From Selaginella moellendorffii (Eukaryota > Plantae > Lycopodiophyta), in NCBI RefSeq assembly GCF_000143415.4, contig NW_003314267.1:3161407-3225406 (forward strand): a stretch of 64,000 nucleotides of DNA, written 5' to 3'. The translations under genes were made by a program, and so were the position numbers. Positions within the stretch are counted from its first letter, which is position 1. Each line of letters starts with the position of its first letter. The notes under the pieces are model-generated. The model saw only the letters and a program-made list of their open reading frames with translations. It made no database searches and was not told the origin of the DNA. This document shows, one piece after another, positions 9,790-59,896 of this stretch.

Positions 9790-12372
9790 ATTTGGCACAA
9801 AAAGACAAAGATGTAATTTCCTTAAATTATGCTATGCTACCTGATGAGGTTCTTCATTATCTAACCACCCTTGAGCTACCTCGAAAGTTCCATTGCACCC
9901 AATTGGCAGCCACACTTGATAAGTTACCTTACCAATGTGCTTTAGTAGTTTATATGGATCAACATATCAATGAAAAAGTTTATCATTCTTCCTATTCTAC
10001 AAAAGTATTAAAGTGTTCTACCGCTCATTTGATGAAAAGATCATTTACACAAAAATGAGAATGAAATTAAAATGATTATTCTAAGCAAAGTGCAATATTT
10101 CAATTGAATTGTCAATCATCTTTTTGATCATATTACACTGTTATGAGGGTTGTTGAAGTTGTTAGCATCATCTTTCATTTGATCTAAGGATTGCAAGCAA
10201 GCATAAATCTCAAAAAGTTATTGACGACTCTTTTAGTTTTGGCATGTTCAAACTATACTTGACCTTCCATTTTATATGTGAATGTTTTTTATATTGATCT
10301 CAGGGGTGTATTGATGCAAAAGAACATAAGTGTGCATGATTAGAATCATCCCATTACATATATCAATTATATGTTACAACCAATAGAAGTGAACTACTTT
10401 ATACATAAGAGTGTTTAGTAGCAATTTTGGGTTTCAAGAAACATTATACACATTTGCATAATTCTTAAACATTACTAAAAAGTGATCATATTACAATTAC
10501 TTCATTATTAAAGCAAAGAAACTTAGATGGTTATACAATTCAGTGGGCTTTAAAGCTTTGGATATATAATATTGTTAGTTATTGCCTAAGGAGTTGTATG
10601 GCTTATGTAAACACTCTTACTCAAGCTCCTTTATCTTTTTCACTCTCTTCTCCTATTCTTGACAAGTTTGTAATTCCAATATTAGTGGATTTTTGGATGA
10701 GGATTCCATGCCAATAGTGATTGATGTACTTAATGTTCAATGTTTATAAGGTATGGAGAAAAATTTGCCTTTTTTTAATGAGGTTCATGAAGTTAAAAAA
10801 GTTGAGCTATGGATTTGAAGACTTCGTAATGGATTTGAGAATCCTATGTCATGCTATTTTAATATTTATATTCTCAATATCACTTTAATAATGACCTTAT
10901 TTATTTTGTTAGGATAAATCTTGATGATCATTTACAACTGGTGGTACTTTTGGTCTTTATTCCATGTTTTCTCCATTCTTACCATGACTATGCTATTCTC
11001 GGCAGGTATATAAAATATCATTATATGACTGAAAAGCTACATAAATATTTTTATTAGTTAGAGATATGATATGATGTTATCTAGTATATGTGTAGTTGTA
11101 TTTAGTGCCAAGCTCATAATATTCCCCCTTGCGCTGCAAAAGGACAGTTAGAGTTAATTATAATTTCTTGTTTATTTGAATTGGTGCAATTTGATTTGAT
11201 AAAGCCTTTTTCAACAATTAACTGTTAACAATAAGTATGTCATTATTGTTTTTAGTTACTTGACTCATTAGGTGAAAGTTAGTGTTATTGCTAGTGCATC
11301 TGCAATTAATATTACATAATTCCTCCTCAATTGGGTGGTGTTCTAGCATTTTTGTCAAGAGCAACTTTTCTCAGATAATAATTGTGTATTTATGGTTGAA
11401 GTGTTTTATATTTTAACATCTCCATTAAAGATATGCTATACATTCATGAGTGTTTATCATCCATAGACAAATGGTTTGGTAGAACAACTTGTTCATACCT
11501 TCAAAGGGATAGAGGGTGGAGTATGTGATTTTCAACATTTAAACTAAAATGGTTATTTGCTGTTTCTTTAGTATGCGTATGTTATAAGGCTACAAAGTTC
11601 TATTAATACTTCATCATATAAACTCTTATATGGTTATGATATGATATTACCAATGGACTTAAGTGTACCTTTGCGATTGCCATAAGCTATTGATGCTAGG
11701 TCTTAAATTTAGTATTTAATAAAGATTCTTCCACTAGTTCAAGTAGAATCTACTAAATACTTATGTTGTGTACAATTAGGACAACAATGGCACTACAACT
11801 CAACTTACAAAGTATAAAGTAGATGACTTGATGTTAGTTCATTTTCCAAATCTTACAATATATGGTTTGTTTAATGTGCTCTTTGCTCAGTGAAAGGGAT
11901 TGTATTGAGTGTTGTAATAAGTTGGACCATAAGTTTATAAGGTTTAGCATGATATACAAGAAATTAATCATCCAAAAATTATTTATATATAATGATTAAA
12001 ACACTTCATACAATGAGATTAGAAATAATTGACACCATCTATAGATATACTAATGCCTCTTTCTAATTTTCCTCTAGATCTTAGCCCATTAATAAAAGAA
12101 CCCTAACTGCCTTTCATCCTTTTGAGAGGAGGGATGATGTAAAGTTTAAGTATACAACTGTGATGTTATATATTAATATTAGTGTAGTGGGATTTTGATA
12201 GCCATTAAATTAGGACTATTTGCTTTTGTATATAAGCTAAGGTTTTAGGGTTAATTGAATATGAATATTTCTATATTCCATTTCAATATTCCATACACTT
12301 ATAAAGTTATAAATTATATTTATCACAAGAAGCCTTATAGATAGTAACTTAAAAATCAATAAAGAAATAACA
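9790..12372 (+). mobile_element. Decayed Ty3/gypsy LTR retrotransposon (RT-RNaseH-integrase remnants, PPT, 3' LTR about 12138-12372)
   Basis: Degenerate motifs in gypsy order: LVVYMD (RT, about 9940), ECLVAILGFKKHY...KSDH (RNase H, about 10410-10490), NKYVIIVFSYLT and YHP*TNGLVEQL (integrase, about 11230-11490), SYKLLYG. PPT GAGAGGAGGGATGA is followed by TGT...AACA. Confidence 0.8.
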
Positions 12373-14711
12373 ATAATGGTATATATATATATATAGTATC
12401 CTAAGCCTCTTAATAGATTAGAAAATGAGATGCACTTTATTCATAAGCCCTTTCCCTTAATATTTGAACTTTTATGCATTATCTAATGAGTCATTTTCTT
12501 TAGTTACTTACAACAAAGTTACATACTGAATAGAATAAAAATAAGTCATAAAACATATATATAGTAAATATTATATTTGAAAGAGAAATTTATAAAAAAA
12601 CATTACTAATATTTAAAAATAATATTGATAAAGAGTCCTACATGAGTTATTGTTAAGTGTTGTTAAATATATGCTTCATACAAAAATAAGATATATACAT
12701 AGCAATAGTTGATGAGGTTCATAGTAATTGCTTAGTTGTTGTAGAAATTTTTATTCCTAGTATAGTAGCAAATTTTTTGGCAAGCTACACTGAGTTAATA
12801 TAATTTAGATTTTGTAGGCTAATCAAAGACTGCTTGTTGCAATTTGCTTCTAATGTTCAAAATATTTACTATAATGTGAGTATTATTTTCTTGCTTTAGA
12901 AAACATGTTATTTAGGTATTGCATGAATGATATGGATTTATATTATTTCTTGGTAAGATAACCCTAATGACAATAATTTTACAAAACTTTATATTCTTGA
13001 TGATACTTATCTCTTTCCTATGGGACTTTGAGACAGTTGTTTAATTTAAGAACTTTGTGGTTGGGGTGTCTTGGTGTAAAAAGTCAACTACATGGATCCT
13101 TGATTAACTGTTGCTTGGTGCAACCTCTTTGATTGAAACAACAATTTTTTCTAAGAAAGGTGACCTTTCTTTTGTATTTCTGATGTAATTAAGTATTTGT
13201 TAAAAACACAATTCTAACATGACTATGTACCTCACTTATTTGTTTGAATTGGCTCAAAGTTAAAAAGGTTTGTATTTCAAACTTGTGGCATACTGTCAAA
13301 TGTTTATTAAAAGAAAACTGAGTTTTGTTTCCTTTCAAAAGGAATAATTCATACTTTAAACAATTGTGTTCTAGTCTCAAAATGTTTTTATTTTATGGTT
13401 TGTTTAGTGACTGATTCAGAACAATGATAATTAACTTTTATATTTACAAAACTTGAAAAATGCTCACCATGAGATGGACTCATATAGGTACACAACCTCC
13501 TAATAGACACATTTTTTTCTTTGATAAACATCAAAGTCTGTGAATAAATTTTACATATTTTTATGAAGGGGTAAGAGTTTTGAAGATTCATTTCTTTGGA
13601 AAGCTATTTTATTTTTCTTATTATTTTCAAAAGATGCCATCTCAGACTGCGAATTATATGAGGAAAAACTATCGGAGTAGTTGCATATAGATACTTCAAC
13701 CTAGTAGTTGCAACTTTATTCCAAGATTATTAGTAGTTGGATGTAGATGCTCCAGCCTTTTTTCTCATAAAATTCCATGATAATAAATGTCAAGTCTCAA
13801 AATGATAATGTTATTTGTTACTAGTAGATAGTAAATACTCCAAGTAGCTAGCTCCAACCTCTACTAGTAACAAAAAATGTTATCATTTGGACACTTGTTT
13901 AAAGAAAATCAGAAAAGGAAAGTGCAAAATAATGTTATTATTTCACATATCCTCATAAGTTCCAGGAATTCATAAGAATAATACTGAATCTTTTGCAAAT
14001 CTGATTGTATACCAAATATATATTTGTTTACAGTCCACTTGTGAACTATATAAATAGTAGAGAAAGTTGGTACACCGAAAGCTGGTATAGAGAAAGTTGG
14101 TAAGTTAGAAACTTTATATTACATAAGACCAGTGTTTTGATTATGACTCATACAACATTGAGTCGTATCATGTCCCATCACCATATGTTTTTCTTGGCAT
14201 TATCATTGAAGAAAGTCATATTCATTTCTTCATCCTAACTTGTGTATATCTTTTAAAATTTCCCTATCTGTAAGGCTAATATAGCTTCTCCACGGCTGCT
14301 ATTCATAGGAGTCAAGATCTTATGCGACAAGATCTAAAACAGGTTGTACATGCGTAAATCACAAACAAATAAAATATTCCAAATCTATTTCATAGAAATT
14401 TTCTAGAACTCAGGAAACAGTTGCAATGAGGCCTCATCAAGCCCAAATACAATCCCCATTTACTTGGAGATTCCACTCGAAAGTAGGGGAAAAGGCGACT
14501 CATTAGTTATCACATAATTATCATTGAAATATTCCGGCACAAGACCTCAAAAGCCCTAATTTGGGGCAGCGACGCGGCGATGGATTTCTTCCCTCCAGAT
14601 CCAAATCGGTCAGGGAAATTTTTTAGCCGGTCTACGACCTTGTTCTTGTTTTCTTCTCTTTGGCGCAATTTGTCTCGTCAGTGATCAGCCCACGATCTGG
14701 CCGCTGTGTCC

Positions 14712-31062: not shown

Positions 31063-33163
<2,101 letters not shown>

Positions 33164-33257
33164 TTAGTTGCACTGCGATTGTACATCCGCCGTTAAAAGC
33201 CAATGGCTAGGATAGATGAGAATATCCTAAGAATCATTTTGAAATTTGAAATTTTTG

Positions 33258-36200
33258 CTAGTCTTCTTCCTCCTCGTCCTCGTCTTCGTCTCCTTCTTCC
33301 TCCTCGAATTCTCCCTCTTCTTCCTCGTATTCTTCCTGTTCTTCGTGGCCTTCTTCCTCGTCAAAGAGCGATGAAATGCCTTCGTAGTCGATCTCTTCGG
33401 GCTGCGCCGCCTTCGCTGCCTTTGGCGTCGCCGGTTCTTCGCCTTCATCACCGCCGCCGCCGAGCGATGGACGCATTGAGAGCATTATCTTTAGAGGCAA
33501 GCAGCAGCAGCCACAGAGTGGTGTCAAGATCCCCATGCCCTGAAGCAAAAGTAGAACATAGAAAGCTGCAAGAAATTCCGAGTGAGATCCGGAGAACTGT
33601 GTGATCAACTCGGAACTTTACCCAGTGCTGCAGCCACAAGGCCTCCAACAAAGAAGAGGATCTTCTTGACACAAAAGTGAGCGATGAAGCATCCAATGTC
33701 GAATGCTCCAGGGCAGTTGCTGCATGGAAAAGTTATACAAGAACGAACGCTAAATGAATGAATGGTTTGCTTACTCGCATTTGCCGAGCAGATTGTTGAA
33801 GAGACCAAACATTTTCCTGAAGGGAGATGTCACGACATTGAACGCGCCCTTGGCAATTCCTTTGATTCCCGCTCCAATCTTTCCAAAGAAACCCAAACCA
33901 CCTAGTCCTTTCGCGAATGTATCGTTTTTTGATCCTGCTATTTGAACTCCACCCTGGTTACAAGCCACAAAATCAATTCATGACAAAAAGTGGTGGATCA
34001 CTGTGCACACATACCACTTGCGAGCCGTTATTGAAAACGGTAGCGGTGGTGGAGAACTTGGCCTCCTTGACATCGCAGTTTTCTCCTTCGGAATCACGGA
34101 GTGTCACTGCAGAGAAAGAAACAAACAGATTGAAAATAAAGAGACTGAATGCAATACCGATGCAGGAGTTTTTCGTTGCATCTGTGCTCCTCGTTATCAA
34201 TGTGTATAAAAAAGTTTGAGGAACATTGGGTATCATGGAAACCCTTTTTCCCTGAAACAAAATGCTAATCAGGAAACAGAGAACGGTGGAAGTTTGTGAG
34301 AGAAGAGAAACTTCTTTACCTCCAAAGGATTGATGTTTGCCGAACATTCCACCTACAGAAGAGACCAGAGTTAAAAGCCTCGCCATGCAGCTTCTAAAGC
34401 AAGTACTCACATACACGCCATAGGACGCCTCCAGTGATCCGTCATTCACCACTGTAAGCGTCAGAGTCCCGCCGGTGGACATTGCCTCAAAAGGCGGCAC
34501 CTCAACCTTGACAATTTTTCCAGTACTCCTGCAACCAATAAACTTCACAGCACATTTTCATCTGGAAAAATTGGAAGGAAAGAAGGATGAGCGAACGAAC
34601 TTGTTTCTCCGGAATGACACGTTATCAGCAGCAATCTCGATGGTTATCAGCGAATTTGTTGGGCTGACAGCAATTTGGAGCGCATCTGGTACCAAGCTCT
34701 GCAGTTCAAACTGTATATCCAACACTAGCGTGTGTGTAATTCGCTTACCCTGTATGATCCATACCGAAACAGACCATGGATGGCAAGCCGACCCTTGCCT
34801 AAAGCTGCCAAGTCTTCCTACAAGCTCACGTAGGATTAAGAAAGAAAACAAAGTTAGAGAAGCACGTACTTTGATGAAATCGATAAGCTGTTCACCGATG
34901 CACATCCCCAAAGCCCCGTCGCAAGTTCTTGGCTGCTGAGCATAGCCCAGGCAAGAGAGTCCAATCCTGTCGCATGCTGATCCAGTTAACGTGACTCTAG
35001 CCTCATCTACGAGCATCCACAATCTGCCATCCGCCCTTGGACTGCCCTGCTCACAAGTTTAGTCTTCACGAAAAACTATGAATGCATCGAGGACGCTTCT
35101 CTACCCTTGTAAACTGTTGCCAGTTACCGTCTGGTTTCTCAGCCTGGACGAGCATTACAAGTGAGCAACTAGCAAGACTTGCAAACCTGATATGTATACG
35201 TACCCTTGGTACGAAGAGATACCTTCCATCCAAAACCGGGATTTGTGTGTAAGATCCCAGATCTCCAATAAGGTAGGCAATAAAGGTCCTGGGACCATTA
35301 ATCGCGGACATCGCAGAGGGACTCAGACGGACAAATTCCTGGAACGAGAAGTGTGAGCCTCAAGACGAAACCTATTATCCGTGAACTCGCCTTGTTCCCG
35401 TTTTGATCTGTGAGTGTGATTGTTATTTCGAAACTAATGGTACCAGTTCGGATGCGAAACATGACACACCTGCACAAGCCTTGGTGCGTTATCACGCAGC
35501 AAAAGAAAAATAACACCAACAGAGGGAGAAGAACTCACCACATTTGGCCGAAGCGAAGGCAAAATGCATAGCCAGCGTCACTTATACCGCAATGACCAGG
35601 CTTGGGCATTCCTCGAAAGTGTTTGATTTGTTTGAGTGGCTTGCATGTACAGCAAAAGCCCTGCAAAAGGCAAGGCTGAAAAATCAAAGGACATAAAAAC
35701 TCCAAACGAAACTTACTGAGCTTCCTGGTACAACGTTTCCCTTTGAATCGCCCAGTCTGTATGGAGAAGATCACACAGGAAGAGTCAGTGTCACAAATGG
35801 ATCTACCCGAAAATCTGAAAGGATAGTTCTTACACTCCACAGGTTGCTTTATCGTTGAGCTTGGTGTTGCAGCCTTTTTTCTTCTTGATGACGCGCTCAT
35901 TTAGATCACCTGCAACATTCTATTCATCCAATCTCTTCTCGCACTAGAGCTCTTCGAGAGGAAGAAAAAGAGCCAAAAGAAAAGAAATGCAAGGCCTCAC
36001 CTTCAGGTACTCGAGCGCGTACTTGACAATGCTGTCCGTCTTGGCGATGTTCACGGAAATGGATTTCTCCAGCACTTGCTTGCCGTCGCGGCTCGTCGGA
36101 TCCTTGACCTCGGCGATGAGCGCCTCGCCATTACCCCCCTGGAAGAGCCAAGGGCAAAATTTCCAGAACCCTAGCTAGAAGTTTGGAGCTTACATCGCCC

Positions 36201-36373
36201 GATGGAATCGCGACCGTGACCAAGATCTTCTTCTTGCACTGGATGGCATTGGGATCGCCCGTGTTGACGCACACATCAAGATCGCTCTTGGAGATGGTCG
36301 TCATGTTGATGGATGGATTCCATAACAGCGCTTGCAAAAGAAAGAGGAGAATCCATTTTACCGCCATTTCCAT
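33258..36373 (-). CDS. HAP2: HAP2/GCS1 gamete fusogen (fusexin), multi-exon
   Basis: Signal peptide, ISKSDLDVC..CKKKILVTVAIPSG, GFCCTC..CLRF..W, HAP2-GCS1 domain WMLVDEARVTLTGSACDRIGLS..QQP..C..C..QL, NSLITIEIAAD, FEAMS..G.L..VVN.G..EASY, pre-TM C..C..FDIGCFI.H.C, then a TM helix. GT-AG splicing kept frame at the junctions checked. Confidence 0.92.
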
Positions 36374-41177: not shown

Positions 41178-42969
41178 TTAACGCAGAGTTCCTGACAACT
41201 GATCGATGAAATGCTCGATGGTGACGAAGAACTCGACGATCGCAACTTCCAGCGGCTGTGCTCTACCCGATTTGTACGTGACCGTCGCCACCGAGTCTTG
41301 CGAGTAATCCATTTCTTCGTCCTCCACATTGCATCCTAAGATCCACCAAAACGTTAGCTCAAGAGATCTAGAAACCAAGAAAAAGGAGAGAAAAACATAC
41401 CAGCTTCTTTGAACACAGCTCCAAGCTGCTTCCTCATCTCCCTTATAATCGGAAGAAGCTCCTCGTCGTCGAGATTAAGGTCCTTCAACAGGTCGAGAAT
41501 CCCCTCCAGTGTTGATTCCATGTCGACTTTGCGGTTTATCAATGCCGTGCGTGACGTCTGGTTCACGTTGATCTTCACCTGGGTTTGTTCTAGCTTGCCA
41601 TCGACCTCATTCACCACCTGAGACACAAGAAAGCTCTTTAGATCATGCAAGTACTTTCTTCGAGCCGGATCTACCTGGAGGAGCTGGTTCACTAGATCAT
41701 AAAACTCACTATTCTGCCGCTGAGCTTGTTTAACAGAGTTGACAACTTCGTTGGGATCGTCGATACCGAGTACATCCATGATGTTTGCCAGGGCCTTAAG
41801 CTCGATCCAAATCCTCTGTTCTTCGCTGCATTCCTTTGGTGGTTTACCCCTCTGGCCAGTCACCTGAACTACCAACAAAAAACTCATGAGCGTAATAAGA
41901 AACTTGAGACGAGCAATCACAGGTACCATCATCTTACAAATTGATCCGCTGGGTTGACCACTTTCGACAAAGGCTCTGGATCCATTATAGCCCATCCTTC
42001 AGTTTCTCTCCACAAATCGTAGGCTCGCATGTCCGCCTCGATCTCGTGGATATCTAAACATCGAATCAAGCTTAGTAACCGCCTGAAAGGAAATGTATAA
42101 CCTGTGATCCGCTCCTCAAAGTCGTTTCTCTCCTCGTAAAAGAGATTGCTTTGCTTTATGCATTCCTCGATCGCAACCTCCATAACTGCAACTTCTGCCT
42201 CCATGTTCTTACGCACGTTTTCATAAAACTCTTTCTCCTCACTGAGCTCCTGCATCTTTGCCTGGAGAAGCTTGTTTTGCTTTTTCACCACGTTGAGGTC
42301 GATAACAGCCTAGCAAAAAATCCCAGATTAACAAGTGATCGCTATAATAATATAGCTGAAAAGGCACCTTTTGCAGCCGGTTTTCGGTAATCGCAACTCG
42401 TATCACAGCTTGCTTGTACTTATCCCTCGCATTGAAAATACCTCCCATGCTTTTCTTAGCTTTCCTCAAGCCAGCATATGATTCTCGTAAAGAGCCTTCC
42501 AGCCCTTCCAGCCTTTTGGCTTCAGATATGACCATCTGACTGAACTTGTCGGCCTCGGACTGCAGAGAGGTTGCTTGCCGACTGACATCCTAAAAACCAA
42601 AAAAGCTCTTCCCGTCAATCACAGATAAACTGCCATGTAGTGGAAAGTAGCAGCACCGGAATGTAATACGTCTCGATTTTCTCCCGAATCCCTCGATTCT
42701 CTGTTTCAAGACTGGCGAGCAAAGCCTCTTGCTTCCGCAGGATGTTCTCGCTTTCATTGTGATAGGATTGCCTGCTCTTCTCGATTACCCTGTAGTTCTT
42801 ATGAACCACCTTCAGCTGCATAATGATCACGATAAATGAATAAAGAAACAATGGAAAACTCTCACAAACAGCTTACATGTTTTTGGTTTGGACCTTCAAC
42901 GGGATTTCCTACAGATGAAAGCTCTTCCTCGCTTGCCGTTGACAGTTCCTCCTCCGCCTCTTCTGACAT
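41178..42969 (-). CDS. Coiled-coil protein resembling outer dynein arm docking complex subunit DC2/ODAD1 (CCDC114/CCDC63 family), multi-exon
   Basis: Spliced product has YRVIEKSRQSYHNESENILRKQ, MGGIFNA...ENRLQK.AVIDLN..KKQNKLL, SNLFYEERN, IMDVLGIDDPNEVV..AQRQNSEFYDLVNQL and FKEAGC. These are collinear with remembered DC2 motifs (RIMEGDRKAY.EESQN.IRKQ, MGG.NA..ENRLDK, TGI.DIDELV..F.EAE..NFSLFNYVNEL). Confidence 0.72.
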
Positions 42970-59796: not shown

Positions 59797-59896
59797 NNNN
59801 NNNNNNNNNNNNNNNNNNNNNNNNNNNNNNNNNNNNNNNNNNNNNNNNNNNNNNNNNNNNNNNNNNNNNNNNNNNNNNNNNNNNNNNNNNNNNNNN
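59797..59896. other. Assembly gap (100 N)
   Basis: Run of N. Confidence 1.

Follow-up and report, generated by a model that had tools for sequence, protein, structure and literature searches.

HAP2/GCS1 is the ancestral gamete fusogen of eukaryotes. In Arabidopsis, HAP2 needs a positively charged C-terminus, a property reported to be conserved among its orthologs, and neutralising the first His-rich domain impairs the protein (Wong et al. 2010, PMC2841615). A Cys-rich polybasic stretch follows the transmembrane helix in many orthologs, and cytoplasmic tails, which may be nearly absent or exceed 500 residues, have species-dependent effects (Pinello and Clark 2022, PMC8777248). The role of the tail is unsettled. 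Here we describe the HAP2/GCS1 gene of the lycophyte Selaginella moellendorffii, contained in a window of 64,000 nucleotides (nt), by which we mean the whole stretch of DNA that was analysed (contig NW_003314267.1, positions 3,161,407 to 3,225,406). Its product keeps the conserved elements next to the membrane and continues into a tail of the opposite charge. The protein record is already public and we found no description of its acidic tail; our literature search, directed at acidic tails in HAP2 and at the Selaginella protein, retrieved nothing on point, and no report of the expression of the latter.

The coding region lies on the minus strand of the window from 36373 to 33258, on scaffold GL377571.1 (GCA_000143415.2); all features of the gene given below are on this strand. 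Eight stop-free exon pieces between 36427 and 33261 match the family profile PF10699 (HAP2-GCS1) colinearly over profile positions 18-514, the two largest scoring 85.7 and 90.1 bits where the cutoff is 27.4, and precomputed PF10699 matches are present on both NCBI-annotated products of the locus. A representative search with one exon piece retrieved the public 470-amino-acid (aa) protein XP_024526222.1, ‘protein HAPLESS 2-A-like [Selaginella moellendorffii]’, which maps onto the window in 12 exons, between which lie 11 GT-AG introns of 50-72 nt, and which is flanked on GL377571.1 by ABCG, SWEET, TIP49 and GRAS genes matching the neighbours in the window. The second haplotype of the locus is represented by XP_024532247.1 and XP_024532248.1. 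In exact look-ups with these second-haplotype proteins and with the GRAS and ABCG proteins of the neighbouring single-exon genes, only the window's own scaffold matched.

Regarding structure, the closest PDB match to XP_024526222.1 by sequence is 5OW3 (E = 9e-36). The AlphaFold model covers the C-terminal 470 aa, that is, only domains II and III of the ectodomain, and its top Foldseek matches are the solved HAP2 structures 5OW3, 6DBS, 6E18 and 5MF1, with E values from 3e-17 (5OW3) to 8e-14, so that the modelled part has the class II fusion-protein fold. All the invariant Cys columns of three HAP2 alignments are present in XP_024526222.1, and the FCCxC motif was found in exon 5 of the full-length model described below. 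The topology is that of a type I protein, with a hydrophobic N-terminus right after the first Met at 36373 (a signal peptide as judged by eye) and a single helix at residues 353-378.

The C-terminus is assembled across the last intron. The stem Cys motif starts at 33779, in the exon before the penultimate one, and continues into the penultimate exon (33622..33719), which also encodes the first half of the transmembrane helix and terminates in phase 1, with ...AAAL plus a G at 33622 followed by gtaaag. The last intron (33566..33621, 56 nt; TGG/gtaaag ... ttcttgcag/CT) ends with the ttgcag acceptor at 33566, and the last exon (33258..33565) then reads (A)FYVLLLLQGMGILTPLCGCCCLPLK..., followed by GGGGDEGEE..., and terminates in EEEED and a stop codon at 33260-33258. 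It thus contains the second half of the helix and, after it, GMGILTPL, CGCCC, LPLK and the acidic tail, in this order. An earlier note, made from the letters of this DNA and a list of its open reading frames, had read a Cys cluster and an acidic tail across precisely this junction, and the C-terminus of XP_024526222.1 is identical to that reading.

Several lines of evidence support this splice by homology and modelling. The RefSeq models of both haplotypes use the junction. The spliced sequence aligns without gaps to 13 other HAP2 proteins along the helix, a conserved Gly-Leu/Ile and the site at which algal proteins have their Cys clusters. In the liverwort Riccia sorocarpa, a continuous genomic open reading frame (L004:5672-5923) aligns without a gap across the Selaginella junction (E = 9e-7). 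Finally, AlphaFold predicts a single helix at residues 353-378 of XP_024526222.1 (33537..33670, interrupted by the intron) that runs across the junction at residues 368/369 with a predicted local distance difference test score (pLDDT) of 85-95. The CGCCC cluster (33501..33515) is in register with the algal clusters KCCCRG and KLCCGR; it is a candidate palmitoylation site and probably palmitoylated.

The cytoplasmic tail (33261..33500) comprises the 80 residues after CGCCC. It contains 35 Asp/Glu, four Lys/Arg and one His, for a net charge of -31 and an isoelectric point (pI) of 4.05, an acidity that is far beyond chance. The tail is predicted to be disordered, in accordance with AlphaFold pLDDT values below 50 for residues 396-470, and Pfam matched no family on the tail exon. 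Within it, a YEGI motif (33386-33375) is followed by an acidic run (33362-33261), and the last 33 residues derive from a degenerate 21-nt, or 7-codon, tandem repeat (33261..33359; 4.6 copies with 75% identity by Tandem Repeats Finder) that encodes the terminal Glu/Asp/Gly run. Codon usage favours the acidic frame: with the ABCG gene, the GRAS gene and the remaining HAP2 exons as the training set, it scored +25.8 bits, in comparison with +0.8 for the Lys/Arg-rich frame and -45.9 for the remaining one.

The tail can be compared with that of the second haplotype. The two haplotypes differ at eight positions, of which one lies in the 353 residues of the ectodomain, one in the 37 of the helix region and six in the 80 of the tail, so the tail diverges faster than the rest (6/80 vs 2/390 positions, Fisher p = 4e-4). 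These six consist of five substitutions and one in-frame codon indel, and the acidic frame is kept, with net charges of -30 and -31. As both haplotypes agree, a sequencing indel, which the earlier note had named as a possible cause of the frame, is excluded. The indel between haplotypes is a single Glu codon inside the 21-nt repeat region, which indicates that at least the last 33 residues were built by repeat slippage.

To place this tail among those of other HAP2 proteins, we collected 185 proteins and located the transmembrane segment and tail in 152 of them, with boundaries that are approximate, as set by a hydropathy window. Among the 143 other tails of at least 10 residues, a net negative charge was found only in one Closterium model of 1831 aa, whose 1133-aa ‘tail’ is probably a fusion. 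The angiosperm tails (n = 116) have net charges from +2 to +22 with a median of +9 and a pI of about 10, that of Cryptomeria has +24, and the 24 other tails (algal, protist and others) have a median of +5. The most negative 30-residue window reaches -23 in Selaginella and -9 at most in the named HAP2 proteins. Hence, the net-positive C-terminus of the orthologs in Wong et al. 2010, a reported regularity rather than a requirement of Pfam membership, is absent here (-31 vs the angiosperm median of +9). As for the Cys-rich polybasic stretch of algal and protist HAP2 tails, the cysteines are present and in register, and of the polybasic portion there are only one Lys and one Arg. For the gene model, the charge-reversed fusogen put forward in the earlier note is supported by the haplotypes, homology, codon usage and its outlying position among the 143 tails.

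The sampling behind this comparison was thin outside the seed plants. A representative search queried with a single exon piece yielded 28 matches, and the search with the full protein, dominated by acidic words, gave one. A profile search listed almost only angiosperms, and one with a bryophyte, lycophyte and charophyte profile gave 26 matches, with no moss, fern or other lycophyte among them; the short matches were fragments, mostly from metagenome collections. The tail of Riccia ends 13 residues after the Cys cluster and is weakly basic, so the acidic part of the Selaginella tail is an extension.

Some HAP2 gene models of liverworts merit comment in their own right. In that of Riccia (KAL3681912.1, 570 aa), the stem, transmembrane helix and tail are removed as intron sequence (L004:5528-5923, CM100800.1), and the uninterrupted genomic frame encodes the stem, the helix and a short tail containing CCC. 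The model of Calypogeia fissa (L005:13925-13990) ends within an intron at the position and phase of the last Selaginella intron (ILG/gtaatg); it probably reads into the homologous intron, which makes its C-terminus ambiguous. A separately called product of 165 aa located 1.5 kb downstream (L005:15311-15991) is very rich in Lys and Arg and terminates in an acidic stretch of Ser and Asp; it may either be the tail exon that the model lacks or come from a gene unrelated to HAP2. In Marchantia polymorpha, the HAP2 match has a locus tag of the V chromosome (MPTK1_Vg00525) and a gene range of more than 400 kb, and its model stops inside or just after the transmembrane helix.

One could argue that the charge was reversed in a single step. 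Under this explanation, which we regard as unlikely although likelier than the other rival explanations, an ancestral Lys/Arg tail written in AAG/AGG-type codons underwent a +/-1 shift near the GGC repeat that follows the Cys cluster, so that Lys/Arg codons became GAA/GAG, and the present acidic tail would be recent and possibly a functionless by-product. The tails of almost all other HAP2 proteins are basic, that of Selaginella diverges quickly between haplotypes, and frame +1 (33230..33484) stays open for 85 codons along the entire tail, with a net charge of about +34 like a typical basic HAP2 tail. Besides, Glu codons show a GAA:GAG ratio of 19:9 in the tail against 34:81 in the remaining genes of the window (Fisher p = 3e-4), and GAA shifts to AAG; this excess is confounded by the 21-nt repeat, because the repeat copies are not independent. 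The AAG-only Lys of frame +1 is likewise forced, as every following codon begins with G.

The basic frames, moreover, are what any acidic frame rich in GAR codons yields. Shifted GAA and GAG are read as AAG/AGG or RGA, and when we shuffled the codons of the acidic frame, the two other frames had mean net charges of +29 and +26, so their basic character is automatic. The frame-1 opening is not exceptional either (p = 0.12): openings of at least 74 codons occurred in 12% of the codon shuffles, since T makes up only 11.5% of the strand. The basic frames were therefore rejected as a meaningful independent signal. Codon usage prefers the acidic frame by 25 bits and does not support the Lys/Arg-rich frame as coding, the acidic frame is present on both haplotypes, and none of the three tail frames retained any similarity to other HAP2 tails after composition correction (best E = 0.8 for the frame-1 peptide against tails of at least 20 residues). 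Support for the frameshift origin suggested in the earlier note is weak and confounded. A broader proposal, that the only HAP2 of this plant works in sperm with a tail of -31, that positive charge is not generally required, and that the reversal came about by one +/-1 frameshift followed by repeat expansion, appears to us less likely still.

A further concern is that the gene is decaying or the model faulty, so that a broken HAP2, or an mRNA with a different end, would never have placed the acidic tail in a working fusogen. In the NCBI annotation, HAP2 is split into two genes of 226 and 470 aa (36373-35323 and 35311-33258) that lie 11 nt apart, and the N-terminal third is absent from all RefSeq proteins of both haplotypes. 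However, a well-formed GC-AG intron of 52 nt (35339..35390; AAG/gcgagt ... ttccag/GAA) is predicted to join the annotated halves in one frame, and the junction peptide ...NGNK/EFVRLSP... is consistent with the family consensus. Five further introns upstream bring the joined model to 18 exons, separated by 17 introns of 50-81 nt, and give one open frame of 694 codons plus stop, with its start at 36373 and a hydrophobic, signal-like N-terminus. We assembled this model only to check that the frame is open; exon references or the public protein served as queries in all searches. Its upstream part is provisional because intron 2, the longest at 81 nt, has a weak acceptor of 2.4 bits, a point that would also fit a faulty model.

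Against decay, the ectodomain differs between haplotypes at only 1 of 353 residues, which argues for constraint, and all the invariant cysteines are kept. The ATG of the next gene (33115) lies just 142 nt beyond the HAP2 stop, so there is no space for a further HAP2 exon. We saw no second HAP2 paralog for this species, and one cluster at 90% identity contains both haplotypes. Judging from sequence, S. moellendorffii seems to have no HAP2/GCS1 gene but this one, which appears intact at 694 aa once the GC-AG intron is recognised, and the public annotation, split at that intron, can be corrected. We therefore consider decay or a faulty model very unlikely.

The earlier note had also pointed to a downstream acceptor, gcttcag (AG at 33541-33540), whose use would lead into a short frame (33448..33541) ending in ARRRR and a stop at 33450-33448, and had proposed that splicing switches the charge of the tail; this site, its frame and the Lys/Arg-rich third frame all exist as described. 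Scored with a matrix derived from 16 acceptors of the gene, those other than the annotated last one, the site reaches 8.9 bits, within the range of these acceptors, against 5.6 for the annotated one. Its pyrimidine content is 87% vs 67%, and the resulting 82-nt intron would be just 1 nt longer than the longest of the model. Nevertheless, the high score is explained by the T-rich codons of the transmembrane segment, as the pyrimidine tract corresponds to the codons for FYVLLLL of the helix followed by Gln CAG. The site lies 26 nt beyond the first AG, and RefSeq lists no isoform using it on either haplotype, X1 and X2 differing only at the 5' end. The product would read ...GHGDLD...ARRRR, with AFYVLLLLQ and everything beyond replaced by GHGDLDTT..., leaving 14 hydrophobic residues followed by HGDLD, with its two Asp, and losing half of the helix, the juxtamembrane G-I-L-x-P-L motif and the Cys cluster. 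With the basic frames being trivial as well, use of this site in some cells or conditions as a functional charge switch is, of all the explanations weighed here, the one we find hardest to credit, although low-level use may occur.

As a whole, the evidence is probably best explained by an ordinary HAP2 carrying a lineage-specific and fast-evolving acidic extension, tolerated or regulatory, that lies outside the fusion machinery. Under this explanation, fusion would proceed as in every HAP2, through a class II ectodomain held in the membrane by a single helix. In the last exon, this helix is completed and the membrane-proximal module retained, composed of G-I-L-x-P-L, the CGCCC cluster (probably palmitoylated) and LPLKI. 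There follows a lineage-specific, disordered and extremely acidic extension of about 70 residues, whose end grew through slippage of the 21-nt GAR-rich repeat. Only four scattered Lys/Arg residues remain of the positive charge. If translated in sperm, this acidic part may represent tolerated drift or may regulate the delivery or retention of HAP2, and its likeliest role, if it has any, would be to control where and when HAP2 reaches the sperm surface. In this regard, the YxxPhi-type YEGI directly precedes an acidic cluster with a CK2-type serine, an arrangement that resembles sorting tails.

Several points weigh against this explanation. Given the positive charge needed by the Arabidopsis protein, an acidic tail might mean that the function of HAP2 is impaired or altered. 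The public annotation splits the gene, its repair depends on a predicted GC-AG intron, and the annotated last acceptor scores below the one downstream, as given above. We found no tail from a moss, hornwort, fern or other lycophyte among the proteins collected, and the sampling on which ‘lineage-specific’ rests is thin. Finally, YEGI and the acidic cluster would be a trafficking signal by analogy only.

Some additional observations concern the surroundings of the gene. The 142 nt between the HAP2 stop and the start codon of the TIP49/RuvB-like gene on the same strand (33116-33257) must accommodate the 3' untranslated region and poly(A) site of HAP2, or these must overlap the promoter and 5' untranslated region of TIP49/RuvB-like. 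The gene at 41178-42535, some 5 kb upstream of HAP2 and likewise on the minus strand, encodes an ODAD1_CC domain (outer dynein arm docking, flagellar); the ABCG and SWEET genes sit between them, and the proximity of two sperm-related genes may be a coincidence. Elsewhere in the window there is an assembly gap, a run of 100 N at 59797-59896, and the G+C content falls to 27-29% at 10001-14000, compared with about 50% in the rest.

The Selaginella gene offers a natural test case for the role of the tail, with a conserved membrane-proximal module and the opposite charge. If this HAP2 supports fusion, the electrostatic model, in which a basic tail acts against the inner leaflet, cannot be general. 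If its tail fails in swaps, partners or a regulation particular to the lineage would be suggested for this plant, whose sperm swim.

By comparison with the described systems, Selaginella HAP2 shares with that of Arabidopsis thaliana (At4g11720, 5OW3) the family, the fold, the stem Cys motif and the single transmembrane helix, and its juxtamembrane G-I-L-T-P is in register with the G-L-F-x-P of Arabidopsis and other angiosperms. In contrast, angiosperm tails are His-rich and net positive and have no Cys cluster, whereas that of Selaginella has CGCCC, one His and a net charge of -31. HAP2 proteins of the Chlamydomonas and Tetrahymena type also carry a Cys cluster right after the helix, in register between Selaginella and two proteins of the collection that are probably algal (P0171 and P0165), but their cysteines precede runs of Lys and Arg, while in Selaginella one Lys and one Arg are followed by the acidic run. 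The closest C-terminus that we obtained from a land plant is that of Riccia sorocarpa, where the helix, G-L-L-x-P-L, L-P-F-R-I and the CCC cluster align with Selaginella without gaps; Riccia has no intron at this point and a short, weakly basic tail, to which Selaginella adds about 70 acidic residues. Beyond the family, sorting tails that combine an acidic cluster with a YxxPhi motif occur in type I membrane proteins such as furin, although to our knowledge such sorting has been shown for no HAP2. Like them, the Selaginella tail is short and disordered and presents a tyrosine motif, here YEGI, followed by an acidic cluster containing Ser; unlike them, it has an acidic run that is much longer and derived from a repeat, and the likeness involves no homology.

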